Below are positions 9,359-28,780 of a stretch of 64,000 bases of DNA, piece after piece. The notes beneath the pieces are model-generated. The model saw only the letters and a list, made by a program, of their open reading frames with translations, was not told the DNA's origin and searched no databases. Both the position numbers and the translations under genes were made by a program. Position 1 is the stretch's first letter, and each line of letters starts with the position of its first letter. The stretch lies in the sequence record KJ019152.1; one strand, given 5' to 3'.

Positions 9359-10708
9359 ATGTCTAAGAGACCAGCAATATATAGAAAAGTCTCAGTAGTT
9401 ACTAAAGATGGTTTTAGGGCAGATATTCGTCTTGCTTGTGTGTCAATTGACTTCTTTCAGGATATAATGTCACCTGCACTAACGGCAAAGATTATTATTG
9501 CCAATACTATGACTAATATTGAGGATGATCAGGGTGCCACCGTATCTCTCTATGAAGGATTGAAGTTGCGCGGTGGTGAGGCAGTTGAGATTGAAATAGA
9601 AGCAAATAGTGAAGATAACTTACCTATTGAATTTAATAATCCTGCGTTGTATGTCAGTGGTGTATCTGAAATGAGTAGGAAGTCACTCAAACAGTTCTTC
9701 ACTATCAACTTATACACCAAGGAGGCATATGATAATGAGACTAAGTTCCTAGAGAAAGCATATCCAAAAGAATCTAGAGTGAGTGATCATGTTAGTACTA
9801 TAGTTTCTGAGTCTTTTCCTACAACTACTCTCAATAAGGTAGATACTACCTCAAATACTTATGGTTTTTTGGGTAATCAACTCAAGCCATTCTATGCTCT
9901 TATCAGGTTAGCAAGTAAAGCAGTTCCTGAAGGTGCTGGTAGTGGTGGAAATAGTGCGACAGCTGGTTTCTTCTTCTACCAATCTATGAGTGGATTTAAC
10001 TTTAGATCCATTGATAAGATGATGGGGGAAGAACCAAAGGCACAATATACTTACACTGAAGTTAGTTCATCTGAAGAGACTGGAGATTTTGAAGCTACCC
10101 CAGAACTACCTTCTAATAGGTTTAAGATTGAGAAGTTTCACGTCACTAAAAACCAGAACCTCTTGAAGAACCTTAGTCAAGGTGTATATGCTTCTGCTAA
10201 GAAGTTCTTTAACCCTGTAGATTTTACAGTCACCCCACCACAAGAGTTCTTCAGTGGTGATAAGTACATCAGGGGTGTTAGTAACTTGGGTCAGGCTTTT
10301 GATCCACAAGACATCAGCTTAGTGGGTGATTCTTTGAGTTTCACTAATGTACCATCTAGGATTCTTAATGAGGTATATGATATTGGAACTGTTGAGAAAG
10401 AAGTGAATCAGGAACCTACACAAAACCCTGATGAGTTTCTAGCACAGAGAAAGATGAGGTATAATACATTATTCACTCAAGATGTTTATATTCAAGTTAG
10501 TGTTAATACTAATCTTGAGGCTGGTGATCTTGTTAAATGTCTATTCCCTAAAACTCAAGAGTGTCCTACTGATGATATAGATCAGGATCAGTTAAGTGGT
10601 CTATATATGATTAAGGAAATTAGACATCACTTTGATACTAGGGGTTCTTATTCATCTATGAGACTACTTCGTGACACCTTTGGTTTATATGGAGTGAATA
10701 ACAAATGA
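9359..10708 (+). CDS. Baseplate hub protein (gp27-like)
   Basis: FFFYQSMSGFNFRSID, NTNLEAGDLV, SGLYMIKEIRHHF; directly upstream of gp5. Confidence 0.55.
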   Translation: MSKRPAIYRKVSVVTKDGFRADIRLACVSIDFFQDIMSPALTAKIIIANTMTNIEDDQGATVSLYEGLKLRGGEAVEIEIEANSEDNLPIEFNNPALYVSGVSEMSRKSLKQFFTINLYTKEAYDNETKFLEKAYPKESRVSDHVSTIVSESFPTTTLNKVDTTSNTYGFLGNQLKPFYALIRLASKAVPEGAGSGGNSATAGFFFYQSMSGFNFRSIDKMMGEEPKAQYTYTEVSSSEETGDFEATPELPSNRFKIEKFHVTKNQNLLKNLSQGVYASAKKFFNPVDFTVTPPQEFFSGDKYIRGVSNLGQAFDPQDISLVGDSLSFTNVPSRILNEVYDIGTVEKEVNQEPTQNPDEFLAQRKMRYNTLFTQDVYIQVSVNTNLEAGDLVKCLFPKTQECPTDDIDQDQLSGLYMIKEIRHHFDTRGSYSSMRLLRDTFGLYGVNNK

Positions 10709-12774
10709 CAATTAAACTTGGTAGAATCGCTGACATTGAACCACAAAAGGAACAGGTCGATGGTGGTGGATGGGCGTGGAGATACAAAGTACGCATCCTA
10801 GACAAACACTCACAGGATAAGAATGTTCTTCCTGATGAGGATCTACCGTGGGCACAGGTTATTATGCCTGTCACGGCAGGTTCTGGTGCTGCTAACTATG
10901 CAGTATCACCTATGATTAACCAGGGTGACACTGTAAGAATTGAGTATTATGATCTAGACGAACAACAACCAGTTATTACAGGTATCCTCCCTAGAACTAA
11001 AAAGGTTTCTACAGGTCCAGTGGGTGAGAATAACGGATATCTACCACACACTGGTTATACAGAGAGGAGAGAGCCAAACTCCAAACAGGTAAAGGATGAG
11101 TCACATGAATCTAATAAGGAGAGTCAAGTATCCACAAGGTCAGATAGGTTCTCCAGTGTTTTTGGTGATACAACAGTTCTAGCAGATAGTTGTGATCCCA
11201 ATGCTTATAAGATTAACGCAGTAACTTCTGCTATCACTAATCTATTCAACCAGATTAATAACTTTGCTAATCAAGCGTCATACATTGAGACTATCACACA
11301 AGCAACTATTGATAGAATTCATGCCATTGTAAATCCATATGTGGGACAAATCTTCAATGGATTGTTTGAGGGATTGGTTCCTATTCTCAACCAGGGTTTG
11401 GCTGCATTATACAAGAAAATATTCGCTCAAGTATTGGCTGCCACTAATGGTAATGTAATTGCTGCCACTGCTGCCGCAGAAGCAGCACTTATCGCACTTA
11501 TGCCAGCTATTATGGCACTACAGGAAGCCATTCAGATGTTGGCATCTCTAACAGTTGAGCAAATGTTAGACGAGATTGATTCCCTAGTTAGGGATGCAGT
11601 TGATAATAATGATGACTTCTCCCGTTGTGCGGCAGAAGACTTCGCTTCTGCTATGATCAACGATATTGTTGATAAGACTGATAATGGTATGCAACCACTA
11701 CTAAACGCAGTCACTATTATTCTAGCACTCGCAAGTGTTGGTAGTGGATTCACCGCTGGTACTGCTATTCGTAGTACTTTGGATGTTCTAAAAGATCTCA
11801 CATCTGCTCTACTTGCACCAGGTCAAAGTGGTGGTGGTAATTGTGGTGGAATCACAAAGGAATATGCATTTGGTATAGGTCCTGTGAAGGATGTGGGTGA
11901 TGTTATGGATGCTCTTCTAGAGTCAGCAAACATAGCAAAGTCACTAGTAGATGAGGCAAAGAAAACACAACAGGAAGTTGATGGTCTCCTAGACACATTT
12001 GGTGACTTCCCATTTATGAGTTCCACTACAAATATTATATCTAATCTAGACAAGTGTTCCACACTAGAACCTACTACTTGTTTTGGTCCTGAAGTTGTAT
12101 TATTTGGTGGTAGAGGTGATGGTGCTAAAGCTCGTGCTATTATTGGCAACACAAAATCAAAATCAGATGATAGAATTGCTGGTAATGCGCAGGGTGGCAT
12201 TGTTGCTATTGAAGTTCTGGATGGTGGTTCAGGTTATGAGTACCCACCATATGTGGATATCAGAGACAATTGTGGTCTAGGTATTGGTGGTGTTGGTAGA
12301 GCAGTCCTAAAGGGTGATAAGGTAGATAAAATCTATATGGTGAATATTGGTGAAGACTATCCTGGAGATGCACCTGGAGATGCACCTGGGGACTTTATTG
12401 TTGATACTATTATCATCGTTGATGGTGGCATAGGATATGAACCAGGTATTACTCCTGGAGGTGAATATGAAGTTATTACTGACCCAGATGGAACAGTAAT
12501 TGATATTATTCCTACCAACCCAGTACCAATTCCTGGTCCTCCAACTATAAATATACCAGATGTATCTCCACCTATTCCACCAGGAGGTAATATCATTGAT
12601 GGTAATGTTGTAGATGAGAATGGTAAAGTAATAGCACCCGCTAAGATTGGTACTGGTTTAGTATTCTATCCAGTTATCAAACAGATACCCCCACTTAAGG
12701 ACCTCCTTGAGGGTAATGTTCCTGGATTTACACCGGAAGAAGTTGTATTCATTATTGATTGTATTCAGAGTTAG
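10705..12774 (+). CDS. gp5: Baseplate spike gp5 N-terminal (OB-fold) protein; no lysozyme domain seen
   Basis: WRYKVRIL..H, LPWAQVIMPVTAGSG, QQPVITGIL; later VLDGGSGY repeats. Confidence 0.75.
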   Translation: MTIKLGRIADIEPQKEQVDGGGWAWRYKVRILDKHSQDKNVLPDEDLPWAQVIMPVTAGSGAANYAVSPMINQGDTVRIEYYDLDEQQPVITGILPRTKKVSTGPVGENNGYLPHTGYTERREPNSKQVKDESHESNKESQVSTRSDRFSSVFGDTTVLADSCDPNAYKINAVTSAITNLFNQINNFANQASYIETITQATIDRIHAIVNPYVGQIFNGLFEGLVPILNQGLAALYKKIFAQVLAATNGNVIAATAAAEAALIALMPAIMALQEAIQMLASLTVEQMLDEIDSLVRDAVDNNDDFSRCAAEDFASAMINDIVDKTDNGMQPLLNAVTIILALASVGSGFTAGTAIRSTLDVLKDLTSALLAPGQSGGGNCGGITKEYAFGIGPVKDVGDVMDALLESANIAKSLVDEAKKTQQEVDGLLDTFGDFPFMSSTTNIISNLDKCSTLEPTTCFGPEVVLFGGRGDGAKARAIIGNTKSKSDDRIAGNAQGGIVAIEVLDGGSGYEYPPYVDIRDNCGLGIGGVGRAVLKGDKVDKIYMVNIGEDYPGDAPGDAPGDFIVDTIIIVDGGIGYEPGITPGGEYEVITDPDGTVIDIIPTNPVPIPGPPTINIPDVSPPIPPGGNIIDGNVVDENGKVIAPAKIGTGLVFYPVIKQIPPLKDLLEGNVPGFTPEEVVFIIDCIQS

Positions 12775-12776
12775 AC

Positions 12777-13478
12777 ATGGCAGAACAAAATTGGGAAAGA
12801 AGAATACTCCAGAGTTTTGGTGCTAACTTTCGACTAGATGTTAGTAACCCACAGAAGACTGTTGGTGGTGAAGATGTATATAACTTCTACTCTGTTACAG
12901 ATGAGGAGAAAGTATGTCTAATGGGACAACAACAGGATGGTCTCTGGCGCCTCTACAATGATGATAAGGTAGAGATTGTAGGTGGTGCCAAAGTTGTTGA
13001 GGATGGTGTATGTGTAACTATTGTTGGTAAGAACGGTGATGTAGTTATTAACGCTGACAACAATGGGAGGGTTAGAATCCGTGGGCAGAATATCAACCTC
13101 CAGGCAGATGAGGATGTTAATATCACTGCGGGTAGGAATGTTAATATCAAATCTGGTTCTGGTAGAACTCTCCTTGCGGGCAATACCCTGGAGAAAGACG
13201 CACTCAAAGGTAATCTATTAGACCCAGAGAAACAATGGGCATGGAGAGTATTTGAAGGAACTGGACTACCTGCTGGTATGTTCCCACAACTCATGTCACC
13301 CTTCAGTGGTATTACAGACCTAGCGGGATCTATTGTTGGTGGAGTTGGGTTCGGTGATGCAATCAGTGGGGCTGTGAGTAGTGCAGTCAGTGGGGCAGTC
13401 AGTGGTGCTGTTGGTGGTGTCGCCGGTGGTGTCGCCGGTGATATTGCTGGTGACGCAATTGGTGGTATTATACCCTGA
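12777..13478 (+). CDS. gp5 C-terminal beta-helix-like spike protein
   Basis: VVINADNNGRVRIRGQNINLQADEDVNITAGRNVNIKSG beta-strand repeats; start refined to ATG 12777. Confidence 0.5.
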   Translation: MAEQNWERRILQSFGANFRLDVSNPQKTVGGEDVYNFYSVTDEEKVCLMGQQQDGLWRLYNDDKVEIVGGAKVVEDGVCVTIVGKNGDVVINADNNGRVRIRGQNINLQADEDVNITAGRNVNIKSGSGRTLLAGNTLEKDALKGNLLDPEKQWAWRVFEGTGLPAGMFPQLMSPFSGITDLAGSIVGGVGFGDAISGAVSSAVSGAVSGAVGGVAGGVAGDIAGDAIGGIIP

Positions 13479-13516
13479 TAAATATAAGAAGCACCTATAA
13501 CTAGCACCTATTAGTA

Positions 13517-16306
13517 ATGGCAAGCATTCAATTCCCAGCAAATCCGAAAGTTGGTGATACTTACTACGACGTAGATACAAATATAACTTACACCTGGGAG
13601 GGTGAATACTGGTTTGCAACAGGACCAGGCACAGGTATTGGTGCCACTGGAGCAACTGGAGCACAAGGAAATCAAGGTTCTAGTGGTGAAAAGGGTGAGC
13701 CAGGAACTCGCGGAATTAAAGGAGATACTGGATCTACTGGTTCTACCGGTCCCACAGGTCCTGGTGGTTTTATTGGATTAACAGGTGCAACTGGTCCTCA
13801 AGGTTCTCCCGGTGGTGCTACCGGTGCTACAGGTAATATTGGTCCTTTAGGAACTACTGGTGCAACTGGTCCTGATGGTGCTAGTGGTGCTACAGGTATT
13901 CAGGGTCCTATTGGTACTCCAGGTGGTGCAACTGGCGCTACTGGTTTAGCTGGTCCTCCAGGAAATGTTGGTGCTACTGGTCCTCTCGGTCCTAATGGTA
14001 CTCCAGGTGGTGCTACTGGTCCTCTTGGTCCTGTTGGTTCTACTGGAGCCACTGGTGCTGGTGCTACTGGCTCTGATGGTGCTACTGGTTCTACAGGTAT
14101 TCAGGGACTACAAGGTTCCCCAGGTGGTGCAACTGGTGCTACTGGTATTGATGGTTTACTAGGTCCTATTGGTGCCACAGGTACTACAGGAGCTACCGGT
14201 GTTGATGGTCCTATTGGTGCCACAGGTACTACAGGTGCCACAGGTGAGACAGGTGATACAGGTTCAACCGGTGCTGCTGGTCCTACCGGTATTCCTGGAG
14301 CCACTGGATTTACTGGTCCCGAAGGTGCTACGGGTTCCAAAGGTGATGAAGGTTCTACAGGTAGTACAGGTCCTCAAGGTTCTCCAGGTGGTGCCACTGG
14401 TGCTACTGGTGTTGATGGTCCTGTAGGTTCTACAGGTGCCACAGCTGCTACTGGTGCAACTGGTCCTGACGGTCCTACTGGTCCCGCAGGTCCTACAGGT
14501 TTATTAGGTGCCACTGGTGCTACTGGTGATGATGGTTCTACCGGAGCCACTGGTGCTACTGGTTTTGGTGCTACAGGTGCTGATGGTGCTACTGGTTCTA
14601 CAGGTTCTACAGGTCCTGATGGTCCTCTTGGTTCTACTGGTGCCACTGGTATTGCAGGTGGTGTGAGTCATGTATGGTCACCAGATGTTTCTATCCTAAC
14701 TGCCAACAACTCTTTCCTATTCACCCATGATGTAGACGAAGATATTAAGATCCTAAAGATCTCCAAGTTTAGTTCAACATTCACCAATGAGGAGGCACTA
14801 CTTAATAGTTTTGCAATCGGTGATTCACTTAGACTAACATCAGGTCCAGCAACATTCCAATATACTGTTAGAGCCAATGGTGGACTCACAGTATCATCTG
14901 GTGTTGACGTGTTTATGTTACTCGTCAGTGATGGTTTCTTAGCATCTGGTAGTGGAACACTCAATGGTTCAACAGTTGTTCTTCAACGTCCCACATCATC
15001 CACCTTCGCTACATTTAACTTCGGTGTATCCACTATCAACTGGCCTACTACTGATGGTGATGTAACTATTGACTATCCATTCCTAGTAAACAATGGTCCT
15101 AGGTATGTTGCATTCAATCAGAAGGATCTACTAGGTAGGGATGATGAGCAGTTCTTCTTTGAACCTTTAGTATCTACAGACCTAAACTCATTCCAGTTCC
15201 AGGTTAAGACTACTAACTTCTTCAAATCAGAAATTGAAGGTGGTTACTACTATAGTGATATTGATGCCTATGTGTATCTAACTGATATCACCGAACTATA
15301 TTCAGATCCAAGTAATCCAGTAACCAGTGTGGGTTCACCTTGGAATGTTCAGGTTGTAGGTATTGCCTCCGCCATTCCTGGTGTTGCTGGTTCTCCAGGT
15401 GGTGCAACCGGTGCTACTGGTCCTGCTGGTCCTCCAAGTGGTGCAACTGGTGCTACAGGTGATCTTGGTCCTATTGGTCCCGGTGGTCCTACTGGTCCCG
15501 TTGGTGTTAACGGATCCCCAGGTTCACCCGGTGGTGCAACTGGTGCCACTGGTGCTGATGGTCCTGAAGGTGCTACTGGTTCTACAGGTGCAACAGGTGC
15601 ATTCGTTACTGGTAGTAATCTTGTAGCAGGTATTATCACAGCCACCACATTTGATGGTGATGCCACATCAGCTAATAAGATTAAGACTAACCGGTCCAGC
15701 AGTGCGGCTGTTAACTATCTAACTTTCGTTTCTGATGATAACACTGGTGGTGCCGTTAGTGAAACCCTCAAGACAAACTTGAATGTAAGTTTCATTCCTT
15801 CTTCTGGTGATTTTATCGCTAGTAGGATTACAGCAAGTAACAACTTCTACCTGGGTGGTACTGAGGTCAATTCTTCAGCATCTGAACTAAATGTGTTGGT
15901 TGGTGTTACTGACTTCTTAGATGAAGATAATATGGCATCCGATAGTCCTACGGCTATCCCATCACAACAATCAGTTAAGAGGTATGTTGACGCTAACGCT
16001 TTCTCTGGTATTACTACAGTTAGTATCCTAGTGGGCGCTGGTTCTAGTGATGTATACTTCGCAAGTTCTATTGTTCCAACTACTAATGAGTCTATTGATT
16101 TAGGTAGTATTGACTATAAGTTCAGAGACCTCTACCTATCAGACACAACCATATATACTAACACTGGTGAACTTAGTGTAGGTTTGAATACCACAGCACC
16201 AACCGCAAAGGTTGTTCTTGGTCCAGCACTACAAACAATTGTTCAACAGTCCACTGATTTTGATGACTTTAAGATCAGAATCGCAGCACAAAGTTGGGGT
16301 GGTTAA
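13517..16306 (+). CDS. Collagen-like fibre protein
   Basis: Long G-X-Y tracts rich in GAT/GST/GPx in two blocks; [13 protein letters not shown]-term; [14 protein letters not shown]-term. Confidence 0.85.
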
Positions 16307-16309
16307 TTA

Positions 16310-16732
16310 ATGGGTTATCGTAATGAGAAAGCTCCCCACACTGGGAGCTTATTGGTAGGAACTGGAGGTAGAGTTACTTTTACTGGTAGATCCTCTGGTG
16401 ATATGAATAAGATTGCTACTTGGGGTGAAGAAGGGGGACAAATAGAATCCACCAACTTTTCTGATCTTCTGGCACTATATGAAGAGTCTTTCGCAGTATC
16501 TATTGTTAGTGAAGATGAACCTTCGCTAAGACCCCTAGGTGAAGACCTAAAACTAGGAGATCTGTGGTATAGTACGTCAGAACGGAGACAGTATGTTTTT
16601 ACAAATGGAATTGATGACCTTCCAGTCACCTTTAGAGGCTGGACACCTGTTATTTCAGGACTTAGTACGATTGCTAACGGATTTGTTGTATCCAATGGTA
16701 TCATTGTTGGTGTGGCAGCAACAACTCCATAA
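16310..16732 (+). CDS. Fibre-associated hypothetical protein
   Basis: GDLWYSTSERRQYVF motif typical of fibre modules. Confidence 0.5.
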   Translation: MGYRNEKAPHTGSLLVGTGGRVTFTGRSSGDMNKIATWGEEGGQIESTNFSDLLALYEESFAVSIVSEDEPSLRPLGEDLKLGDLWYSTSERRQYVFTNGIDDLPVTFRGWTPVISGLSTIANGFVVSNGIIVGVAATTP

Positions 16733-16767
16733 TATGGTATAATGGTGGGTAAGTATCTTATACCCAC

Positions 16768-17331
16768 ATGAGCCACGAGCACGAAGATTACGAATTTGAA
16801 AAAGATTATTGGGGTGATTGTTGTAATACCTTCGATGAGGATCAGAAACACTATGTGTATGCCCGTCTAATGGGATTAGAACAGGCACACTATAGTTTTC
16901 GTTTGCCTGGTATTTCTGTAATTGATATTGGTGGCGGTCCTTCTTCGATGTTATTGAAGACTGAAGGACTTACTAGAGGTTTGGTTGTAGATCCTATTTC
17001 ATATCCTCAATGGACTAAAGATAGGTATTCAGTAAAGAATATTGAAGTCCATGTAGATGTTGGTGAGAATGTAACAGAGACAGGATATGATGAGGTGTGG
17101 ATATACAATTGTATGCAACACGCTATTGATCCAGAGAAGATTATTGCTAACGCAAGGGAAGCAGCACCAGTCCTAAGATTGTTTGAGTGGATTGATATTC
17201 CAGCACACGATGGTCACCCCCACGAACTAACAGAGCAATCACTAAATAAGTGGATTGGTCAAACCGGTAGTGTTACATCTCTAGCAGAGAGTGGTTGCTA
17301 TGGTAAAGCATATTATGGAGTATTTGAGTGA
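16768..17331 (+). CDS. Class I SAM-dependent methyltransferase-like protein
   Basis: VIDIGGGP motif I, VVDP, YDEVWIYNCMQHAIDP. Confidence 0.7.
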   Translation: MSHEHEDYEFEKDYWGDCCNTFDEDQKHYVYARLMGLEQAHYSFRLPGISVIDIGGGPSSMLLKTEGLTRGLVVDPISYPQWTKDRYSVKNIEVHVDVGENVTETGYDEVWIYNCMQHAIDPEKIIANAREAAPVLRLFEWIDIPAHDGHPHELTEQSLNKWIGQTGSVTSLAESGCYGKAYYGVFE

Positions 17332-18419
17332 GTAATAAGTTTCGATTTCATATTCTCGGACTCCCCCATACTGTTACGCATCCAGACTTCTCCGCATGTG
17401 CGTACACATCTAAAGTCTTAAAGTTCGGTAAGATGATGAAGGCACGTGGGCATGAAATCATTCACTATGGACACGAAGATAGTGAGTTGGTTTGTGATGA
17501 ACATGTTACAGTAACTACCAACAAAGACTTAGAGATTGCTTATGGTGATTATGACTGGAGAAAGAACTTCTTCAAGTTCAATACATCGGACCACGCATAT
17601 CAAACCTTCTACAAGAATGCTATTGAAGAAGTAGGTAAGCGCAAACAGAAGAATGATTTCATCCTACCTTTCTGGGGTAGTGGTACTCGTCCAGTTTGTG
17701 ATGCTCACCCAGAAATGATTTGTGTGGAACCTGGTATTGGTTATGCTGGTGGTCACTGGTCTCAGTGGAAAGTGTTTGAGAGTTATGCCATTCTCCACGC
17801 TTATCAGAACCTAACATCAGTAGGAACCTGTAAACAGAGTTGGTATGAGGTTGTAATCCCTAACTATTTTGACTTAGATGATTTCACCTACGCCCCAGAA
17901 ACTAAAGAAGACTATTTTCTATTCTTGGGGCGCGTATATAGTGGTAAGGGCATTGATATTGCTGTACAGGTTACTGAACACATAGGTGCTAAACTAAAAG
18001 TAGCAGGACAGAACCCAGAGAATAGAACTTTCCCACCACATGTGGAGTTTGTTGGATATGCTGATATTGAGATGAGACGGGAGTTGATGTCTAAAGCAAA
18101 GGCATCCTTTGTTGCATCACAATACCTAGAACCTTTCGGTGGTGTTCAGGTGGAGAACTTATTATCAGGAACTCCTACTATCACTACAGACTGGGGTGCT
18201 TTCGTTGAGAACAACCCAGACGGACTAACTGGTTTCCGTTGTCGTACATTCGGTGACTTTGTTGATGCCGCTAATAACATTGACCAGATATCTCCTGCAG
18301 TATGTCGCACTTTCGGTGAGCAGTTTGCACTGGAGAATATTGCTCCCAAGTACGAGAAGTATTTCCAGGATGTTCTCAATGTATATACTGGAAAGGGATG
18401 GTATGAACTAAATGAATGA
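17328..18419 (+). CDS. Glycosyltransferase, GT-B fold (GT4 / group 1)
   Basis: FLFLGRVYSGKGIDIA; EPFGGVQVENLLSGTPTITTDWGAFVE (Ex7E). Confidence 0.9.
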   Translation: MSNKFRFHILGLPHTVTHPDFSACAYTSKVLKFGKMMKARGHEIIHYGHEDSELVCDEHVTVTTNKDLEIAYGDYDWRKNFFKFNTSDHAYQTFYKNAIEEVGKRKQKNDFILPFWGSGTRPVCDAHPEMICVEPGIGYAGGHWSQWKVFESYAILHAYQNLTSVGTCKQSWYEVVIPNYFDLDDFTYAPETKEDYFLFLGRVYSGKGIDIAVQVTEHIGAKLKVAGQNPENRTFPPHVEFVGYADIEMRRELMSKAKASFVASQYLEPFGGVQVENLLSGTPTITTDWGAFVENNPDGLTGFRCRTFGDFVDAANNIDQISPAVCRTFGEQFALENIAPKYEKYFQDVLNVYTGKGWYELNE

Positions 18420-19005
18420 ACTAATACAAACGATTGATTGTATTACTCAAACTGAAATCAATACAATCAAAGAATATGTCCAAGATGATTGGTGGCAACC
18501 TACTACTATCTTTGGAATGTCTGGTTGTGAAATTAATACAGATGTTAGATCCAATGATAGAATATCTCTCCATGATGATAGTATTGCCGCTCAGATTATT
18601 CATACGGGTATGAATAAGGCACTCCTTGAGTATAGAACACAACTCTATAATGTTGATCCATACTTCAACAATTACCCAGTTCCAGGATCATATAGGACTA
18701 ATTGTCATAGGGAAGGTATTCAACTCCTTAGATATAAAGAAGGACAACACTACAACTGGCATCACGATACTGCAGCAGAACGTGCAGTAAATGAGTATCA
18801 CAGAACGATCTCTATTGTGTTATACTTATCAGATGACTTTGAGGGTGGTAGAACAGTCTTCCCCCACAGAGCATACAAACCAAAAGCAGGTCAGGCACTA
18901 ATTTTTCCCTCTAACTGGTGTTTCCCACATAAGTGTGAACCAATCACAAAGGGTGTGAAGTTAGCATCTGTTTCCTGGTACTATTCACATTATAACTATG
19001 ACTGA
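18412..19005 (+). CDS. 2OG-Fe(II) oxygenase (prolyl 4-hydroxylase-like)
   Basis: YNWHHD; RTISIVLYLSDDFEGG; ALIFPSNWCFPHKCEPI..GVK. Confidence 0.9.
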   Translation: MNELIQTIDCITQTEINTIKEYVQDDWWQPTTIFGMSGCEINTDVRSNDRISLHDDSIAAQIIHTGMNKALLEYRTQLYNVDPYFNNYPVPGSYRTNCHREGIQLLRYKEGQHYNWHHDTAAERAVNEYHRTISIVLYLSDDFEGGRTVFPHRAYKPKAGQALIFPSNWCFPHKCEPITKGVKLASVSWYYSHYNYD

Positions 19006-19174
19006 AAATAAGACTACACCACAAACAGTAGAAGAAGCAACTCATGCTGCTTTCACTGGAAAGATGAACATGATCAAGTGTGCAGAACACTGTGGGATGA
19101 CGATAAAACAGTTTAAATTAACCTTCCGTGAGTATCTAAAATACCACCCAATAGACGAAAATTATCCTATCTAA
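18998..19174 (+). CDS. Small hypothetical protein (58 aa, not in ORF track)
   Basis: MTENKTTPQTVEEATHAAFTGKMNMIKCAEHCGMTIKQFKLTFREYLKYHPIDENYPI. Confidence 0.6.
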   Translation: MTENKTTPQTVEEATHAAFTGKMNMIKCAEHCGMTIKQFKLTFREYLKYHPIDENYPI

Positions 19175-19208: not shown

Positions 19209-22200
19209 TTGCCCCTTAATAAGTTAGAGAATTTCATTAAGAATACGGATGGACGTACTCTGTATGTTAATCCAAACGATCTTAATGCTACTGATAGTAT
19301 TACAAACCAAGGCACTTCCCTTACAGAACCCTTCAGAACTATTCAGAGGGCGTTAATTGAGAGCGCGCGTTTCTCATATGTGCGTGGTGATGATAATGAT
19401 CTCATCGAGAGAACCACCATCATGGTGTATCCCGGTGAGCATCCTATCGATAACCGTCCTGGTTTCGGTATTAAGACAGTAGGTAATAGTCCGGTAGCGG
19501 TAACTCCTTCAGGTGAATTGATTGATCCGTTCCAAGCATTTAACCTGACTGATGCTAGTAACTTTGATATTGAGTCTAGTAATAACGTTCTCTATAGATT
19601 TAACAGTATCCACGGTGGTGTGATTGTTCCCCGTGGTACTTCTATCGTGGGTATGGACCTACGTAAGACAAAGATTCGTCCGATATATGTTCCCAACCCC
19701 ACTGATGATTCAGTAGATTACTCAGCGATCTTCCGTATCACAGGTACTTGCTACTTCTGGCAGTTCACCATCTTCGATGGTAATGAGAATGGTGTAGTAT
19801 TCACTGATCCAAGAGATTTCTCTGAGAATAACCAGTCCAGACCCACTTTCTCACACCACAAACTAACAGCATTTGAATACGCTGATGGTGTTAACCCAGC
19901 GGTAGAATCAGGGTTTGAACTTACTGACCTTGCTATGTATTATAGTAAGTTGTCTAACGCATATAATGAAGCATCTGGTCGTCCTATTGATGAGAAGTAT
20001 CCATCAGATCCTGGTGGTTTTTCACCACAACGTCCTGAGTTTGAGATTGTTGGTGCATTCGCAACTGACCCAATCAATATCACTCGTTTAATCTCTGGTG
20101 ATGGTTTTGTCCCTGATGCTGTCATCACAGTAGATACACAGGTCCCACATGAACTAAACACTGGAACACCAATTAAGATTCGTGGTGTTGCTATCAGTGA
20201 CTATAATATCTCTACAAAAGTATCTGCAGTTCTTAGTCCTACTAGGTTTACGTATAACCTATCATTCGTAAGACCTAACCTACCAGCAGAACCTTCAGTA
20301 TCCTCTGCAACTGTAACCGTTGAGACTGATACTGTAACAGGTGCTTCACCATACATCTTTAACTGTTCGATGAGATCAGTTTGGGGTATCAATGGAATGC
20401 ACGCCGATGGTGCCAAAGCAACTGGATTCCGTTCCATGGTTGTTGCTCAGTTCACCGCGATCTCCCTTCAAAAAGATGATAGATCCTTCGTTACTTATAA
20501 TAAACAGGCACGTAGATACGATGGTATCAATGTCAATAAGACTGTAAGGGGTGCTGAACTATCTGCACAGTCATCTTCTACCAACTCAGCAACTGTATAC
20601 CACCTAGATCCTGACGCTATCTATCGTCCTGACTGGGGTACAACTCACATCAAGATGAGTAATGATGCAGTCATTCAGATTGTGTCTGTATTCGCTATTG
20701 GTTTCAATCAACACTTTGCTTCTATTGGTGGAGCTGATGCATCAATCACAAACTCTAACTCCAACTTTGGTCAGTTTGCACTGAAAGCTGATGGATTCAA
20801 GAATGATGCTTTCCTCAAAGATGATAAAGGTTTCCTAACATCATTTGTTTCTCCTAAGAGTGCGTATAACCCAGAAACTGATGATATTGAGATCATTGAC
20901 TGGATCAACATTGACTTTGATCTAACTCGTAGTATTGCCTTTGCTAATCAACTCTATCTAACTGGTTATACTAACGCGGAAGATAAACCACCAGTAGTTA
21001 ATCAGGGTTTCCGAATTGGTGCCAACTACAAAGAGAGTCTCATTCAGAGAACAACAGTTGGTGCTGGTGCAGATGTAACCTCATCAGTAAGAATGTGTGA
21101 TAATATTCTCGGTCCTGGTAACAATCAAGCCAATGGTAGTAGTGTTGCTAGGAAAGTATATCAAGTTCTAGCAGGACCTATCAACAATACCCTCTCACTG
21201 GGTGTTCATGGACTACTTAATGGTGAGAGTGTAAGAGTATTCTCATCAACAGGTGACCTACCTGAGAACCTAGAAAGAGGTGCCCTATACTACGCAAATG
21301 TGGTTGATGGTGAGAATATTCGTATTGCTACTTCCGAGTCTAATGCACTCAACAACATCTTCCTCAACATCTATGGTGGTGTTGAACTTCGTGTTGAGTC
21401 TAGAGTTAATGATAAGGAAGCAGGTGAAAGAGGTCATCCCGTTCAGTATGACTACACTAACCAGAACTGGTTTGTTCATACTGATGCCAATAGTGATATC
21501 TATCAGTATATTGTAGCCAACCCAACCTCTACAGATGGTATTGACTTTGTATCCATATTCAAGAGATTTGGTGATAACAGGGCACTAGAAGACAAACTAT
21601 ATCGCCTCAGGTATGTTATTCCTAAGGAGTCAAGGAACGCAAAACCACCTACCCCTGGTTATGTTCTACAAGCATCAGCAACAACAGGTGCTAGGAATAA
21701 CGATGACTTTATCCTACAGGATATTGGTATCAATGACTATGAATATAACAGAAACCCACGTTATGTTGTAAGTTGTACTGTTATTGCTAATGAAGTTGAG
21801 GTTCGTAGTGAGATTCCACACAACTTGAATGTTGGTGATAAGATTAAAATAGTGAATGTTGCCAGTACAAATAACACTGGCGCATCACAAATCAAAGGTT
21901 TCAATGGTGAGTTCCTAGTTACTAGAGTTATCAACTCTCGTGAGTTTAGGTATGATATTACTGATGTAAATGGTTTTAGTAGAAATCCTGGTACCTTTAC
22001 CAACAACATCAATGAAAGAAACATTCTTCTACCTCGTTTTGAGAGAAAGGATCTACAGAGTAATGTATTCGTATATCGTATTGAAACTATCACTGATTTC
22101 CTAGAAGGTGAGAGAGATGGTATCTACCATTTATTCCTTCTTAATGGTTCTAACCCAGTAACAGAGACATTCACTGATATCCAATACAATCAACCTGTGG

Positions 22201-25076
22201 AAGATTTATATCCACAGATGGATCCTGATAACCTTATTCAGAACCCCCCTGCAACCACAACGTTTGCTAAGAGGGCACCCCTAGGTGATGTTACTATTGA
22301 TGAACAACAGAACTCCATTACTAAAGAGTCTGTTGATAAAATATACAAGACACTTAATGTTGGTATCATTGAGACTGCTACTGATGGCACTGTTGGTGCT
22401 GGTGGAACACGTACAACCACACTAACATTCCAAAGAGAGCACGAGTTCAACTCTGTGTATAGTTACACCACACTAGTTGGTGGTGGTGGATATACTGATG
22501 GTACTTTCTATGATGTTAAACTACTCAGTGAGTTTGGCACAGTATGGGGAGGTGCTTCTGCTGTTGTTACTGTTACTGCTGGTACAGTTACCGCAGTTAC
22601 TATCATGGATCCTGGTTCAGGTTATTCTGCAGGTCAGACACTATTCATCGATGGAACTACAATTGGTGGTGGTACTAACGCTACTATTAGTATTACTCAG
22701 GCAGACTTAGAGGATAACAAGCATAGTATCCTACAGATTTCTGGTGGTGCTTTGTATAACCCAGATTCATATGTAGTGATGACCAGTGTTGAGGATCAGT
22801 CTTCAGTTGGTGTTGCTAGAACTTCTGGAAGTCCTGCTATTATTCCTGGTATGTACGCATATCCAGCAGATAGTGGAACAGGTATTTCTTCAACTACATA
22901 TAACTCCGATACAGGTTTAACAACACTAGTATCTACAGGTAGTGCTGGTTTTGGTCTTCAGAGAGGTAACACTTTCGTTGTATTCAGTGATAACTATAGT
23001 TATCTTGGTAAGTTCTTTGTATCTAACGTTCCAACTCCTGACACTTTGGAGTTCTACTCATACAGAGATCTTGGAACTGTATCTATTGTAGGTAAGACAG
23101 GTTTAGATGTAAATGATGCTAACACTGGTTCCTTAGGTGAGAACGTGGGTGTTAGAGCTACACCACTATATGATAACGGTGTATTCTATCTTGAACAGTC
23201 TTCAGGTACTGGAACACAACTAACAGTTAGGGCTGAAGATGGTGGTGTGGCTGGTAATGTAGACTCTAAGATGTACCTAGGAAGATACTTCCAAATGGGT
23301 TCTGAGATTATCAGAGTTGCTAGTAAGAACTTTGATGGAGCCAATAACAATATCGTAACTGTTATCCGTGGTGCTCTTGGTACCGTTGTTAGCAACCTTC
23401 CCATTAATACTAAGGTGAAGGCAATCAGACCTTCCGCACTAGAACTTAGAAGACCTTCTATTCTACGTGCCTCAGGTCACACCTTTGAATATCTTGGTTA
23501 TGGTCCTGGTAACTATTCCACTTCATTACCACAACTACAGGTTAAGCAACTCCCAGATGATGAAATTTACCTAGTACAGGCTCAGGAACTATCCTGTGGT
23601 CAGGTTGTTTATACTGGTATGAGTGATAATGGTGACTTCTATATCGGTAATACCAAGTATTCCGCAACCTCAGGAACACAATCAACCTTTGATGTTCCCA
23701 TCCCAACTGTTGCTGGTCAACCAGGTAGTTCTAATAATGTTGTGTTTGATGAAGTTATCATCAACCGTCGTCTATTCGTATCTGGTGGTGAAACTAATGA
23801 GGTTCAGTCACAGTTTGATGGTCCTGTTAAGTTTACCCAGTCTGTTACTATTCAGAACAATCTTTTCGTAACTGGTACAACTCAACTCAATAGAATTGAG
23901 ATCACCAGTACAGAGAACGCAACCAGTTCTGCTAATGGTGGAGCACTAACTATCAGAGGTGGTGCTGCTATTGGTAAAGACTTCTATGTTGGTGGTGAAA
24001 TGTACACCAACGCATATCAAATAGAAGATACAAGTGCAGTTCTTGAAATTGGTACTAACCAGTCATCTAAGGATATCTCTGTTGGTGGTTCAACTGATAC
24101 AGATAGAGTTGTTTTTAATACAACTAAACTAGCAACAGGTGAAGGTGCTGAAGAGGTAGTTAACGCAGACGCTGGTGTTGTTGTTGAGGGTGGATTAGTT
24201 GTTCGTGATGTTATTATCGCGAAAGAGTTTAGAGGTGCTGGAACTGGTGGTGGTCCTGGTACTATCCTACTCTGGGGTGGTTCTACTAGTGCTCTCCCTG
24301 ACAGATATCTACTCTGCAACGGAGCTACTCTCAATAAAAACACATATAACAAACTATTCGAAGCCATTGGTTATATCCATGGTGGTAGTGGTAATAGTTT
24401 TAAGTTACCAGATTTGAGAAATAGGTTTATCCCTGGTGCTGGTAGTTCTTATGCGGTAGCTGCAAAAGGTGGGGATGATTCAGTTGTACTAACTGAAACG
24501 CAGATGCCACGCCACACGCACTCAACTTCAGCAGTCAACGCACCACATACTCACCCAGTATCGTTTACTAGTGGAGCGGCAAATGCACCACATAAACACC
24601 CAGCTGGCACAGGTGGCGGTGGAAATCATAACCACCCATCAGGTGGCACAGGTGGTGGTGGTAATCACAATCACCCATCAGGTGGCTCTAACAATACAGG
24701 CAACCATGGACACCCGTATAGTGCTCCGGGGCAATCCAAAACTGATGTTGCTAATTCTAACGAGAAGAATGTAACTAGCAACGTCAATGCCTCAGGTGCA
24801 GGAACCGGTGGTGGTGGAGCACACTCCCACTCTGTTTCAGTTAACAGTACATCCTCAGCTCATAATCACCCAGTAAGTGTCAACTCTGGATCTTCAGCTC
24901 ATAATCACCCTGTTAGTGTTAATTCAGCTAATGCACCACATTCCCACCCAATTAGTGGTAATGCAGGTTCTGCAAACGCACCTCACGTTCACCCAATTGG
25001 TAATACTGGTGGTACTGCTTCCTTTGACAATAGACCCAAATACTACGCTCTCTGCTATATTATCCAATCAGAGTGA
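19209..25076 (+). CDS. Large virion structural/tail fibre protein with collar domain and HxH needle
   Basis: MPLNKLENFIK start; C-terminal collar (LLCNG..YNKLFEAIG..FKLPDLR); 11 HxH motifs; RPKYYALCYII end. Confidence 0.85.
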   Translation: MPLNKLENFIKNTDGRTLYVNPNDLNATDSITNQGTSLTEPFRTIQRALIESARFSYVRGDDNDLIERTTIMVYPGEHPIDNRPGFGIKTVGNSPVAVTPSGELIDPFQAFNLTDASNFDIESSNNVLYRFNSIHGGVIVPRGTSIVGMDLRKTKIRPIYVPNPTDDSVDYSAIFRITGTCYFWQFTIFDGNENGVVFTDPRDFSENNQSRPTFSHHKLTAFEYADGVNPAVESGFELTDLAMYYSKLSNAYNEASGRPIDEKYPSDPGGFSPQRPEFEIVGAFATDPINITRLISGDGFVPDAVITVDTQVPHELNTGTPIKIRGVAISDYNISTKVSAVLSPTRFTYNLSFVRPNLPAEPSVSSATVTVETDTVTGASPYIFNCSMRSVWGINGMHADGAKATGFRSMVVAQFTAISLQKDDRSFVTYNKQARRYDGINVNKTVRGAELSAQSSSTNSATVYHLDPDAIYRPDWGTTHIKMSNDAVIQIVSVFAIGFNQHFASIGGADASITNSNSNFGQFALKADGFKNDAFLKDDKGFLTSFVSPKSAYNPETDDIEIIDWINIDFDLTRSIAFANQLYLTGYTNAEDKPPVVNQGFRIGANYKESLIQRTTVGAGADVTSSVRMCDNILGPGNNQANGSSVARKVYQVLAGPINNTLSLGVHGLLNGESVRVFSSTGDLPENLERGALYYANVVDGENIRIATSESNALNNIFLNIYGGVELRVESRVNDKEAGERGHPVQYDYTNQNWFVHTDANSDIYQYIVANPTSTDGIDFVSIFKRFGDNRALEDKLYRLRYVIPKESRNAKPPTPGYVLQASATTGARNNDDFILQDIGINDYEYNRNPRYVVSCTVIANEVEVRSEIPHNLNVGDKIKIVNVASTNNTGASQIKGFNGEFLVTRVINSREFRYDITDVNGFSRNPGTFTNNINERNILLPRFERKDLQSNVFVYRIETITDFLEGERDGIYHLFLLNGSNPVTETFTDIQYNQPVEDLYPQMDPDNLIQNPPATTTFAKRAPLGDVTIDEQQNSITKESVDKIYKTLNVGIIETATDGTVGAGGTRTTTLTFQREHEFNSVYSYTTLVGGGGYTDGTFYDVKLLSEFGTVWGGASAVVTVTAGTVTAVTIMDPGSGYSAGQTLFIDGTTIGGGTNATISITQADLEDNKHSILQISGGALYNPDSYVVMTSVEDQSSVGVARTSGSPAIIPGMYAYPADSGTGISSTTYNSDTGLTTLVSTGSAGFGLQRGNTFVVFSDNYSYLGKFFVSNVPTPDTLEFYSYRDLGTVSIVGKTGLDVNDANTGSLGENVGVRATPLYDNGVFYLEQSSGTGTQLTVRAEDGGVAGNVDSKMYLGRYFQMGSEIIRVASKNFDGANNNIVTVIRGALGTVVSNLPINTKVKAIRPSALELRRPSILRASGHTFEYLGYGPGNYSTSLPQLQVKQLPDDEIYLVQAQELSCGQVVYTGMSDNGDFYIGNTKYSATSGTQSTFDVPIPTVAGQPGSSNNVVFDEVIINRRLFVSGGETNEVQSQFDGPVKFTQSVTIQNNLFVTGTTQLNRIEITSTENATSSANGGALTIRGGAAIGKDFYVGGEMYTNAYQIEDTSAVLEIGTNQSSKDISVGGSTDTDRVVFNTTKLATGEGAEEVVNADAGVVVEGGLVVRDVIIAKEFRGAGTGGGPGTILLWGGSTSALPDRYLLCNGATLNKNTYNKLFEAIGYIHGGSGNSFKLPDLRNRFIPGAGSSYAVAAKGGDDSVVLTETQMPRHTHSTSAVNAPHTHPVSFTSGAANAPHKHPAGTGGGGNHNHPSGGTGGGGNHNHPSGGSNNTGNHGHPYSAPGQSKTDVANSNEKNVTSNVNASGAGTGGGGAHSHSVSVNSTSSAHNHPVSVNSGSSAHNHPVSVNSANAPHSHPISGNAGSANAPHVHPIGNTGGTASFDNRPKYYALCYIIQSE

Positions 25077-27234: not shown

Positions 27235-27293
27235 TGTGACAGTCGACAAACTGGCACAGGGGGGTTGGCAAACCCCCTTTTTTGTGCTATAAT
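27235..27293 (+). promoter_or_regulatory. Cassette 1: dyad + terminator-like hairpin + sigma70 promoter
   Basis: TGTGACAGTC-GACA-AACTGGCACA; TTGGCA-17-TATAAT; GGGGGGTT/AACCCCC hairpin with T6. Confidence 0.9.
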
Positions 27294-27999: not shown

Positions 28000-28208
28000 T
28001 GGATTTTGTGGCATTTATGATTGATAAGGAAAACGCCTTATCACTGATACAATCACTTCACGAATCTGCCGATAAGTGTAGTAAAGATGGAAGACGAATT
28101 ATGGAAGCAAACTATACCAAACTAGCAGACATGATGATGGAACAATACCTAGTATCAGAGAGTATCCACAGGAAGAGAAAAAGAAATAACGGAGATTATA
28201 TCGGCTAA
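27999..28208 (+). CDS. Hypothetical protein
   Basis: Translationally coupled ORF (TGATG). Confidence 0.5.
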   Translation: MDFVAFMIDKENALSLIQSLHESADKCSKDGRRIMEANYTKLADMMMEQYLVSESIHRKRKRNNGDYIG

Positions 28209-28780
28209 TGATTGACTATCTTACCATCCCTAATAGCTTATCAGACAAACTTTGTGACGACATCATTCACAAGTTTGACAGTGATGATAGAGTTGATTAT
28301 GGTAAAATTAATATGGGAGATGTTGATACTGAGGTCAAAAGATGTAAAGAGTTGTTCATATCAATCCTAGATAACTGGCGAGATCTTGACAATCAGGTAT
28401 TCAATGCGTCGGTGAAAGGGTTAAGTCAATACCGTGAGTACATTAATGAGTTATACGATGCCGATTATCTTCTAGGATCAGATAATTCTGATCAAGGTTA
28501 CCGGGTAAAGAGATACGATATTGGTGAAGATTACTTTCATTGGCATCATGATCTACGTATAGATGAAAACCGTAGGATGAGATCAGTTGCCTTCATATGG
28601 TATCTAAATGATGTGGAAGAGGGTGGTGAAACAGAATTTAGTAATGGTCTAAAGATACGTCCAGAGAAAGGTAAACTACTTCTATTTCCATCTACATGGA
28701 ACAACGTACACAGAGGGAATACACCAATAAGTAATACGAAGTATGCTATTACTAGTTTCCTCTATTCCTCCTACGATTAG
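28208..28780 (+). CDS. 2OG-Fe(II) oxygenase
   Basis: FHWHHD; FIWYLNDVEEGGETEF; LLFPSTWNNVHRG..KY. Confidence 0.92.
   Translation: MIDYLTIPNSLSDKLCDDIIHKFDSDDRVDYGKINMGDVDTEVKRCKELFISILDNWRDLDNQVFNASVKGLSQYREYINELYDADYLLGSDNSDQGYRVKRYDIGEDYFHWHHDLRIDENRRMRSVAFIWYLNDVEEGGETEFSNGLKIRPEKGKLLLFPSTWNNVHRGNTPISNTKYAITSFLYSSYD

Follow-up and report, generated by a model that had tools for sequence, protein, structure and literature searches.

The DNA analysed here, positions 13,517 to 19,005 of a 64,000-nucleotide window, the whole stretch that we studied, belongs to the baseplate and tail-fibre block of Synechococcus phage ACG-2014f isolate Syn7803C25 (KJ019152.1), with which it agrees at 100% identity and at the same coordinates. 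ACG-2014f is a T4-like cyanomyovirus (Kyanoviridae, Atlauavirus) with a genome of about 221 kb, of which the window is the first 64 kb. The locus encodes a collagen-like fibre protein, gp15, followed on the same strand by genes of a methyltransferase, a glycosyltransferase (GT) and a 2-oxoglutarate (2OG)- and Fe(II)-dependent oxygenase. Here, we describe these genes and the associations that may link the enzymes to the maturation of the fibre.

The gene of the 929-amino-acid (aa) protein gp15 spans positions 13517..16306 of the + strand, which also carries all the other genes of the locus. It is followed by a 140-aa open reading frame (ORF; 16310..16732), the gene of the 187-aa predicted methyltransferase (P0003; 16768..17331), the gene of the 363-aa GT, which starts with GTG (17328..18419), and the gene of the 197-aa oxygenase (P0005; 18412..19005). 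A 58-aa ORF (18998..19174) overlaps the oxygenase stop and precedes the gene of a 1955-aa giant tail fibre (19209..25076), which contains a Phage Tail Collar domain (PF07484, 6.1e-17, at aa 1684-1741). The three enzyme genes overlap start-to-stop; they are flanked on the 5' side, ahead of the fibre gene, by a late-promoter-like motif, and on the 3' side by the giant tail-fibre gene. The methyltransferase stop overlaps the GT start in the sequence GTGA, and overlaps of 8 nucleotides (nt) join the GT to the oxygenase, and the oxygenase to the 58-aa ORF. Related phages have a small ORF at the same place, since ORFs of 63-93 aa are located 3' of the oxygenase in S-CAM7, P-SSM2 and many contigs. 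GenBank labels three genes of the locus as 'collagen triple helix repeat protein', 'group 1 glycosyl transferase' and 'PiuC', and the remaining ones as 'hypothetical'. An initial annotation, made from the sequence without database searches, described the enzyme genes as co-oriented with the fibre gene and confined to 2.7 kb, and they indeed end 2.7 kb past the fibre stop codon; its gene set was incomplete, as the 140-aa and 58-aa ORFs had been missed.

Protein gp15 matches the Pfam family Collagen (PF01391, E=3.4e-41) in five stretches and also matches PHROG tail-fibre families. It contains 132 G-X-Y triplets arranged in 12 tracts, and each break between tracts is a one-residue shift of the repeat register. 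The tracts are located in aa 42-383 and 629-696, and the middle and C-terminal parts of the protein are globular. The X position is mostly occupied by Ala or Pro (Pro in 30 triplets). The Y position is Thr in 59 of the 132 triplets (45%) and Pro in 10-11; Lys is present at 0.02 per triplet. The triplets GAT, GST and GPT occur 33, 13 and 5 times, respectively, in agreement with the Thr, Ser and Pro that the initial annotation had read at Y. The motif G(S/T)PGGATGATG, six copies of which mark the one-residue register shift, holds most of the Y-position Pro residues. The N-terminal motif FPxNPxxGDxY..W.W.G..W (encoded at 13517-13630) is common to collagen-like fibre ORFs with differing repeats (GAT, GAQ, GPP and GDK; loci L084, L208, L229, L256 and others), and is probably a baseplate-attachment module. 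The position of the gene among baseplate and fibre genes, the PHROG matches and the shared N-terminal motif suggest that gp15 is a virion component whose chains would trimerise into a triple helix. Contigs from marine metagenomes and metatranscriptomes that were aligned to the collagen region (13741-15568) show many internal skips of 93-1368 nt, which are either repeat-number variants in wild relatives or assembly slips within the repeats. The N-terminus of the 140-aa ORF resembles that of gp015 of S-CAM7, a 635-aa collagen-like protein (41% identity over 49 aa, E=1e-8). The ORF has no Pfam match, is matched end to end by phrog_3608, and may represent a second fibre gene in remnant or shortened form. 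Many phages of marine and fresh waters have collagen-like fibres.

The 363-aa protein is, by its sequence, the GT-B glycosyltransferase that the initial annotation had proposed, and is of the Glycos_transf_1 type. It matches PF00534 (1.8e-12, 47.6 bits, cut-off 26.4) and PF13692 (2.5e-10, 41.2 bits, cut-off 27), and its EX7E motif, E268-x7-E276, is invariant in an alignment of the GTs of three cultured phages. Glycos_transf_1 enzymes mostly belong to the CAZy family GT4, which the initial annotation had named and which is a candidate assignment for the protein. The closest solved relative is the retaining GT-B enzyme glucosylsucrose synthase (7fg9), which aligns with the C-terminal half only (7e-18). 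Among cultured phages, the GT is present only in ACG-2014f, in S-CAM7, which belongs to another genus (85% identity), and in the unrelated myovirus S-CBWM1 (31% identity). A collagen-like gene with GAT/GPT repeats is located directly upstream of the GT in S-CAM7 and S-CBWM1, and three genes upstream in ACG-2014f.

The gene neighbourhoods of the GT were surveyed in the best 80 of 470 IMG/VR relatives, whose GTs form 25 clusters at 85% identity. The flanks examined extended 8-10 kb around each locus gene. A collagen ORF was defined by runs of at least five G-X-Y triplets and a total of at least 15-20 triplets, with at least 20 triplets required for the counts over 80 loci. Loci of gp32 (n=80, 712 kb) and of one paralogous oxygenase resembling prolyl 4-hydroxylase (P4H; n=79) served as controls, neither being a tail-module gene. 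The contigs are not independent samples, and P values from ORF counts ignore shared ancestry. A collagen ORF is present in 44 of the 80 GT loci (7.1 per 100 kb), in none of the 80 gp32 loci (0 per 100 kb), and in two of the 79 loci of the paralogous oxygenase (0.23 per 100 kb). Single-sequence searches with two candidate tail-module controls, the gp5-like protein (10705-12774) and the tail-tube cap (2882-3841), yielded only 1 and 3 loci. A collagen ORF lies within three genes of the GT in 13 of the 25 clusters and directly adjoins it in seven, always on the same strand and in several gene orders, which argues against one inherited arrangement. All ten long GT-bearing contigs that were searched whole carry collagen genes, with the GT within about 6 kb of them in seven contigs and 18-27 kb away in three. 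Collagen genes are present in two of five gp32-control contigs lacking the GT, a pair of near-duplicates.

The GT family extends to bacteria, where one set of species-representative genomes contains 46 loci from many phyla. Thirteen of these loci have a collagen-like ORF, in several cases directly upstream of the GT, and all thirteen ORFs are rich in Thr/Ser, with Pro at a fraction of at most 0.04 of Y positions. Bacterial loci combining the GT with Thr/Ser-rich collagen-like ORFs (L361, L365-L367, L369, L372, L373, L378 and L384) come from metagenome-assembled genomes (MAGs) and Kaistia nematophila; the taxa represented are Clostridia, Lachnospiraceae, Oscillospiraceae, Acidiferrales, Saccharibacteria and an alphaproteobacterial isolate. 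As judged from gene neighbourhoods in viral contigs, the GT family is strongly associated with collagen-like fibre genes, and this independently of the oxygenase.

The 197-aa oxygenase matches PF13640 (2OG-FeII_Oxy_3; 3.8e-18, 66.7 bits). The residues of its HxD...H...K site, H117, D119, H173 and K183, are invariant in 21 orthologues. The best match among solved sequences is the P4H of Bacillus anthracis (1e-8), followed by the enzymes from algae and the chlorella virus PBCV-1. The top Foldseek neighbours of its AlphaFold2 model (predicted local distance difference test, pLDDT, 90) are PHD2, PBCV-1 vCPH, Chlamydomonas P4H, Dictyostelium PHD, Pseudomonas PPHD and PiuC, almost all of them protein prolyl hydroxylases. 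According to the predicted structure, the protein is a 2OG-Fe(II) oxygenase with the prolyl-hydroxylase fold.

Full-length relatives of the oxygenase with 40-58% identity are encoded by S-CAM7, P-SSM2, P-SSM5 and AG-345-L05. In S-CAM7, P-SSM2 and AG-345-L05, a small ORF and then the giant fibre gene come immediately after the oxygenase gene, and collagen-like ORFs are located upstream of it. The GT is absent from the oxygenase loci of P-SSM2 and AG-345-L05, and present in that of S-CAM7. A collagen ORF is found in 55 of 80 loci of oxygenase orthologues from IMG/VR (11.7 per 100 kb), and no more than four genes from the oxygenase in 25 of 26 informative orthologue clusters. Since the GT is present in just three of 32 oxygenase clusters, the association of the oxygenase with collagen is independent of that of the GT. 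Gene neighbourhoods indicate that the association with collagen is specific to this oxygenase orthologue group.

The 187-aa protein has no Pfam, NCBIfam or significant PDB sequence match, and its sole family match is phrog_3603, the function of which is unassigned. PDB matches to designed 'Cake' propellers consisted of repeated sub-threshold stretches and were discarded. The AlphaFold2 model, calculated from an alignment of 43 of its 692 metagenomic relatives, has a pLDDT of 92 and a predicted template modelling (TM) score, pTM, of 0.87. Among the matches listed, the Foldseek neighbours of the model in the PDB are S-adenosylmethionine (SAM)-dependent methyltransferases (E ~1e-6, TM 0.5-0.65, probability 1.0), with the exception of the cyclase SpnF, which has the same fold. 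In the 43 homologues, the motif I and ribose-binding residues D53, G55, G57 and D75 do not vary, and G56 varies hardly at all. The Rossmann-like α/β fold of class I SAM-dependent methyltransferases is thus predicted with confidence, and the protein is a methyltransferase by predicted fold.

Proteins of the P0003 type adjoin the GT in about a dozen loci. Methyltransferases of five types, including P0003-type, Methyltransf_23/11, FkbM and MTS-type, accompany the GT in 15 of the 25 GT clusters. The two enzymes are also found as fusions: the GT is joined to a P0003-type domain in L040:3465-5096, to a Methyltransf_23/11 domain in L008:7998-9641 and L031:5109-6797, and to an FkbM domain in L013:1954-3750. 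Further loci have an FkbM or MTS-type gene 3' of the GT. A second glycosyltransferase follows the GT in seven of the 25 clusters, and in L018:64-2097 the GT is fused to a second GT1 domain. This distribution indicates that the methyltransferase is linked to the glycosyltransferase and not to collagen. The swapping of differing methyltransferase types beside the GT points to a required methylation step, and in the simplest reading the target of the methylation would be the transferred sugar.

The identities of the enzymes given in the initial annotation were retained with qualifications. The SAM methyltransferase is borne out by the predicted fold and motif I, although no sequence family supports it. 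The P4H-like character of the oxygenase is seen in both sequence and fold, but a paralogue that is not linked to collagen is equally P4H-like. The co-occurrence of collagen genes with the three enzymes, which the initial annotation had suggested as a check, holds for the GT and the oxygenase, each of which is linked to collagen, whereas the methyltransferase is linked to the GT only. The three enzymes do not form a conserved triad: the P0003-type methyltransferase, the GT and the oxygenase occur together only in ACG-2014f. In S-CAM7 a second glycosyltransferase replaces the methyltransferase, and P-SSM2 has the oxygenase and five collagen-like genes, and no glycosyltransferase.

The Y-position residue of the neighbouring collagens fits the enzyme type. 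Collagen ORFs of GT loci without the oxygenase have a median Thr/Ser fraction at Y of 0.65, with 95% of the ORFs at or above 0.45. In oxygenase loci without the GT, the median is 0.17, and 75% of the ORFs have a Y=Pro fraction of at least 0.08 or at least 0.2 Lys per triplet. The Mann-Whitney P values for composition, 3e-20 and 1e-10, ignore shared ancestry and are to be read only as indicating a large effect. The richness in Thr/Ser extends to 14 of 15 collagen ORFs that lie on GT-bearing contigs at a distance from the GT; the collagen ORFs of the GT-less phages G012, P-SSM2 and AG-345-L05 do not share it. Genomic guanine-plus-cytosine (GC) content was rejected as the cause of the difference, because the background GC is 0.39 versus 0.35 and the correlation within the GT set has the opposite sign. 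Collagens rich in Pro or Lys are located beside the oxygenase in 17 of 25 orthologue clusters. The Lys-rich fibre ORFs, with (GDK/GQK/GEK)n repeats and up to 0.68 Lys per triplet, adjoin oxygenase orthologues in L212, L240, L224, L257 and other marine contigs. By analogy with Mimivirus, these Lys-rich neighbours raise the possibility of lysyl hydroxylation. A specialisation of oxygenase subclades on Pro-type or Lys-type collagens was considered and rejected, as the two types are interleaved on the tree of the oxygenases, which is a quick tree.

The sequence ATAAATA is the core of the late promoters of T4-like phages. It is located at positions 2092, 2870, 4500, 9328, 13478 and 25081 of the + strand, 12-40 nt ahead of six structural gene starts; the copy at 13478..13484 lies 33 nt 5' of the fibre ATG and may function as its promoter. 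Nine of the ten ATAAATA copies in the 64-kb window are on the + strand. The count of TATAAATA is not above that in shuffled sequences (5 found versus 3.5 expected), so that only the positions of the sites are informative. From these positions, the sites look like the T4-type late-promoter set of ACG-2014f. ATAAATA is absent from the window between 13484 and 25081, and the region from the fibre gene to the giant fibre gene (13.5-25 kb) may therefore be a single late transcript. An extended -10-like element, TGGTATAAT (16735..16743, + strand), recognised by its match to the consensus, is positioned 24 nt 5' of the methyltransferase ATG and could give the enzyme cassette its own transcript, separate from that of the fibre gene. 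Two oligo-dT marine metatranscriptomes contain short contigs, 90-99% identical to the locus, that cover the fibre gene, the junction of the 140-aa ORF and the methyltransferase, the GT and the oxygenase; these matches are assembled contigs, and are no proof of transcription, strand or level. Further downstream, at 27258-27293, a strong terminator-like hairpin (a 9 bp stem followed by a T run) 3' of a tail-fibre-like gene overlaps a near-consensus sigma-70 promoter (TTGGCA, 17 nt, TATAAT, with TG). The hairpin and promoter mark a sharp border between the late structural genes and a region of small ORFs.

We give about even chances to the reading that these genes form a late-expressed tail-fibre module whose enzymes mature the phage's own collagen-like fibre, a reading that is based on the associations described above. 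The mechanism that we infer, in every chemical step, the identity of the sugar, the modified residues and the presence of gp15 in the virion, is as follows. Protein gp15 would be a trimeric fibre, and because its (G-A/S/P-T)n tracts contain little Pro, the usual stabilisation by hydroxyproline would be missing. The GT-B enzyme would O-glycosylate Thr/Ser in the Y position in the cytoplasm, before or during fibre assembly, and the small methyltransferase, translationally coupled to the GT, would methylate the transferred sugar. We lean towards this part of the scheme, namely glycosylation of the fibre by the GT at Thr/Ser in Y and capping of the sugar by the methyltransferase. As in the cuticle collagen of Riftia, the glycosylated Thr would make the triple helix more stable and shield it, and it would also alter the fibre surface met by hosts, proteases and grazers. 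The oxygenase would hydroxylate a residue of a fibre-module protein, a step to which we assign a chance just short of even. In this phage, Pro within the junction motif G(S/T)-P-G-G-A-T-G-A-T-G, of which there are six copies, is the best candidate; the hydroxylation could alternatively fall on the FPxNP motif at the N-terminus or on the giant tail-collar fibre. That all three enzymes act on gp15 is a tentative proposal. The initial annotation had suggested that the phage hydroxylates, glycosylates and methylates its own fibre: the comparative association and the match in composition speak for this, while the hydroxylation of the collagen tract is doubtful.

Several observations weigh against maturation of the fibre by the co-encoded enzymes. 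Among solved structures, the best relatives of the GT are enzymes with sucrose and tetrahydrobiopterin as substrates, and only the donor-binding half aligns with them. Eleven of the 25 GT clusters have no collagen ORF in view, about six of them with truncated flanks, and the GT is located 18-27 kb from the collagen genes in three of the analysed contigs. In one 164-kb contig (L061:4779-11632), the GT clusters with a fatty-acid-desaturase-like gene, an MTS-type methyltransferase, a PF13640 oxygenase that is 25% identical to P0005, and a second GT. This cluster is positioned 27 kb from three Thr-rich collagen genes and looks like a small-molecule or glycan pathway. The paralogue encoded at 28208-28780 of the window also has the B. 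anthracis P4H as its best match, and the closely related record G001 (ACG-2014f_Syn7803US26) has eight PF13640 genes and one collagen gene; P4H-likeness by itself therefore says little. The seven further PF13640 genes of G001 are scattered (28478, 109441, 123409, 126870, 127537, 145382 and 148029), and relatives of the 28208-28780 homologue are almost never found near collagen genes. A homologue of the giant tail-collar fibre is present in 28 of the 32 oxygenase clusters and is an equally constant neighbour, and most of the association between the oxygenase and collagen is contributed by a single viral family in which synteny is conserved. The collagens beside the oxygenase are nearly free of Pro and Lys in eight clusters, including the sister clade of the ACG-2014f oxygenase, which adjoins (GAQ/GAT/GHQ)n collagens; the prolyl hydroxylation of the gp15 collagen tract is therefore doubtful. 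The interleaving of Pro-type and Lys-type neighbours on the oxygenase tree adds to these points. The Pro-rich collagen of the GT-bearing contig G002 (about 158 kb) was predicted to adjoin an oxygenase, and the only PF13640 gene there is 23 kb away.

The alternative that survives best, and that we still regard as unlikely, is that the GT and methyltransferase genes, and perhaps the oxygenase gene too, are auxiliary and serve during infection to remodel glycans of the host envelope, such as lipopolysaccharide, or to make a methylated glycoside or small molecule, their position beside the fibre gene being incidental. The literature assigns cyanophage GTs to modification of the host cell wall or of DNA (PMC12801897), the nearest solved GT homologues are cyanobacterial small-molecule glucosyltransferases, and the gene cluster of L061, with its desaturase-like gene, methyltransferase, 2OG oxygenase and second GT, is 27 kb away from the collagen genes. 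TGGTATAAT could drive transcription of the enzymes apart from the fibre gene. However, such a role leaves unexplained the enrichment of collagen ORFs near the GT relative to both controls, their adjacency on the same strand across differing gene orders, and the restriction of the neighbouring collagens to Thr/Ser-rich ones, bacterial MAGs included. The likeness to small-molecule GTs is, in addition, limited to the half of the protein that binds the nucleotide sugar.

The enzymes might instead modify other virion proteins: the giant tail-collar fibre (19209-25076), the N-terminal FPxNP module, or proteins of the baseplate. We hold this to be rather improbable, even though the constancy of the giant fibre speaks for it, with the oxygenase directly before the small ORF and giant fibre in ACG-2014f, S-CAM7, P-SSM2 and most contigs. 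Some oxygenase loci (L221, L241 and L253) have the giant fibre and no collagen ORF in view, and the sister-clade collagens without Pro and Lys fit a target elsewhere. Collagen-like and tail-collar proteins were both proposed as substrates of bacterial dioxygenases (Iyer et al. 2010, PMC2938197). Most GT loci, on the other hand, lack the giant fibre and yet contain Thr-rich collagens, and in L240, L243-245 and L224 it is a collagen ORF, not the giant fibre, that is located directly 3' of the oxygenase.

It is improbable to a greater degree that only the GT and methyltransferase concern the fibre, and that the oxygenase is a further member of the cyanophage 2OG-oxygenase expansion with a role in metabolism, stress or secondary metabolites, its position being inherited synteny. 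Members of the orthologue group as low as 40% in identity are still found beside collagen and fibre genes, even though the collagens differ in number and type (25 of the 26 informative clusters), the paralogue loci nearly always lack a collagen ORF (present in 2/79), and the oxygenase gene overlaps its neighbours within the structural gene block. What suggests the metabolic role is the presence of eight PF13640 genes in the genome, the equally P4H-like paralogue, the imperfect agreement of collagen type with the oxygenase tree, and the interpretation of cyanophage dioxygenase arrays as secondary-metabolite genes (Iyer et al. 2010, PMC2938197). Glycosylation of the phage DNA by the GT as an anti-restriction hypermodification is very improbable, because, although GT-B enzymes of other phages with a fold match to the same solved structure have been proposed as DNA glycosyltransferases (PMC13326640), the gene is placed in a structural block, no pyrimidine hydroxymethylase or hydroxylase was seen beside it, and the link to collagen genes and their composition would be left unexplained.

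If the enzymes do mature the fibre, the finding may reach beyond ACG-2014f. We speculate, at less than even confidence, that aquatic phages and prophage-like loci in many bacterial phyla carry widespread, as yet undescribed collagen-fibre maturation systems, in which a dedicated co-encoded enzyme is matched to the chemistry of the repeats. A GT-B enzyme and a methyltransferase would serve (G-A-T)n fibres, in which methyl-glycosylated Thr replaces hydroxyproline, and an oxygenase of the prolyl-hydroxylase fold would serve Pro-rich and Lys-rich fibres; ACG-2014f and S-CAM7 would be the uncommon cases equipped with both. Glycans on the fibre would in that case act as a hidden determinant of how stable cyanophages are and which hosts they infect. 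Maturation of the fibre by the enzymes would mean, more generally, that a glycan coat invisible to genome annotation may govern how cyanophages adsorb, which hosts they infect, how their particles decay and how many are lost to grazing. Genes now listed as 'auxiliary metabolic genes' acting on the host envelope would need to be reclassified as virion-maturation genes, and a part of the long-unexplained expansion of cyanophage 2OG oxygenases would gain a function. Such a pairing is, in addition, a compact route of bacterial type by which recombinant collagens might be stabilised.

The closest known counterpart is SgtA of Clostridioides difficile, which is encoded beside bclA3 and adds N-acetylglucosamine to Thr of GPT repeats (PMC7157674). 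The SgtA-BclA3 system, like the BclA glycoproteins of the Bacillus exosporium, shares with the phage locus a GT gene adjoining a collagen-like gene with G-x-T repeats. SgtA is, however, a GT-A enzyme with tetratricopeptide (TPR) repeats (PMC7157674), whereas the phage enzyme is of the GT-B type, and the resemblance is therefore one of analogy, not of homology. In the phage, a methyltransferase and an oxygenase of the prolyl-hydroxylase fold are also part of the module, whose putative target is a phage fibre instead of the spore surface. Giant viruses encode collagen-like proteins together with their own 2OG oxygenase and glycosyltransferase enzymes (PMC9546862, PMC12279948), and one of these enzymes, the collagen prolyl hydroxylase vCPH of PBCV-1 (5c5t), ranks high among the structural neighbours of the phage oxygenase. 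The Mimivirus enzymes L230, a fused lysyl hydroxylase and glucosyltransferase, and R699 perform a hydroxylysine-linked chemistry of a eukaryotic virus, whereas the phage enzymes are separate small proteins. Unlike the L230 substrate, gp15 is nearly devoid of Lys, and the sugar would be attached directly to Thr.

The mycobacteriophages Che8, Corndog and Myrna O-glycosylate their own virion proteins with GTs encoded near structural genes (Freeman et al. 2023, as cited in PMC12619734 and PMC12801897). In the accounts given by these citing papers, the targets are the C-termini of capsid and tail-tube subunits, the hosts are actinobacterial, and a methyltransferase or oxygenase partner is not part of the system. 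Iyer, Abhiman, de Souza and Aravind (2010) predicted that bacterial collagen-like or tail-collar proteins are hydroxylated by co-encoded 2OG dioxygenases and receive a further modification on the new hydroxyl group (PMC2938197). Their operons differ from the ACG-2014f locus in having oxygenases of the beta-hydroxylase and PhyH types and a sulfotransferase as the follow-up enzyme. The cuticle collagen of Riftia pachyptila, according to the summary in PMC11766948 of Mann et al. 1996, has G-X-Thr repeats in which glycosylated Thr takes the place of hydroxyproline at the helix-stabilising Y position. It is an animal, extracellular collagen made by unrelated enzymes, and provides a physical analogy only. 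A full-text literature search returned no description of a collagen-fibre modification module in a tailed phage. The parts of the module had been annotated already; their functional link, its breadth, and the rule that connects enzyme type with collagen composition appear to be new.

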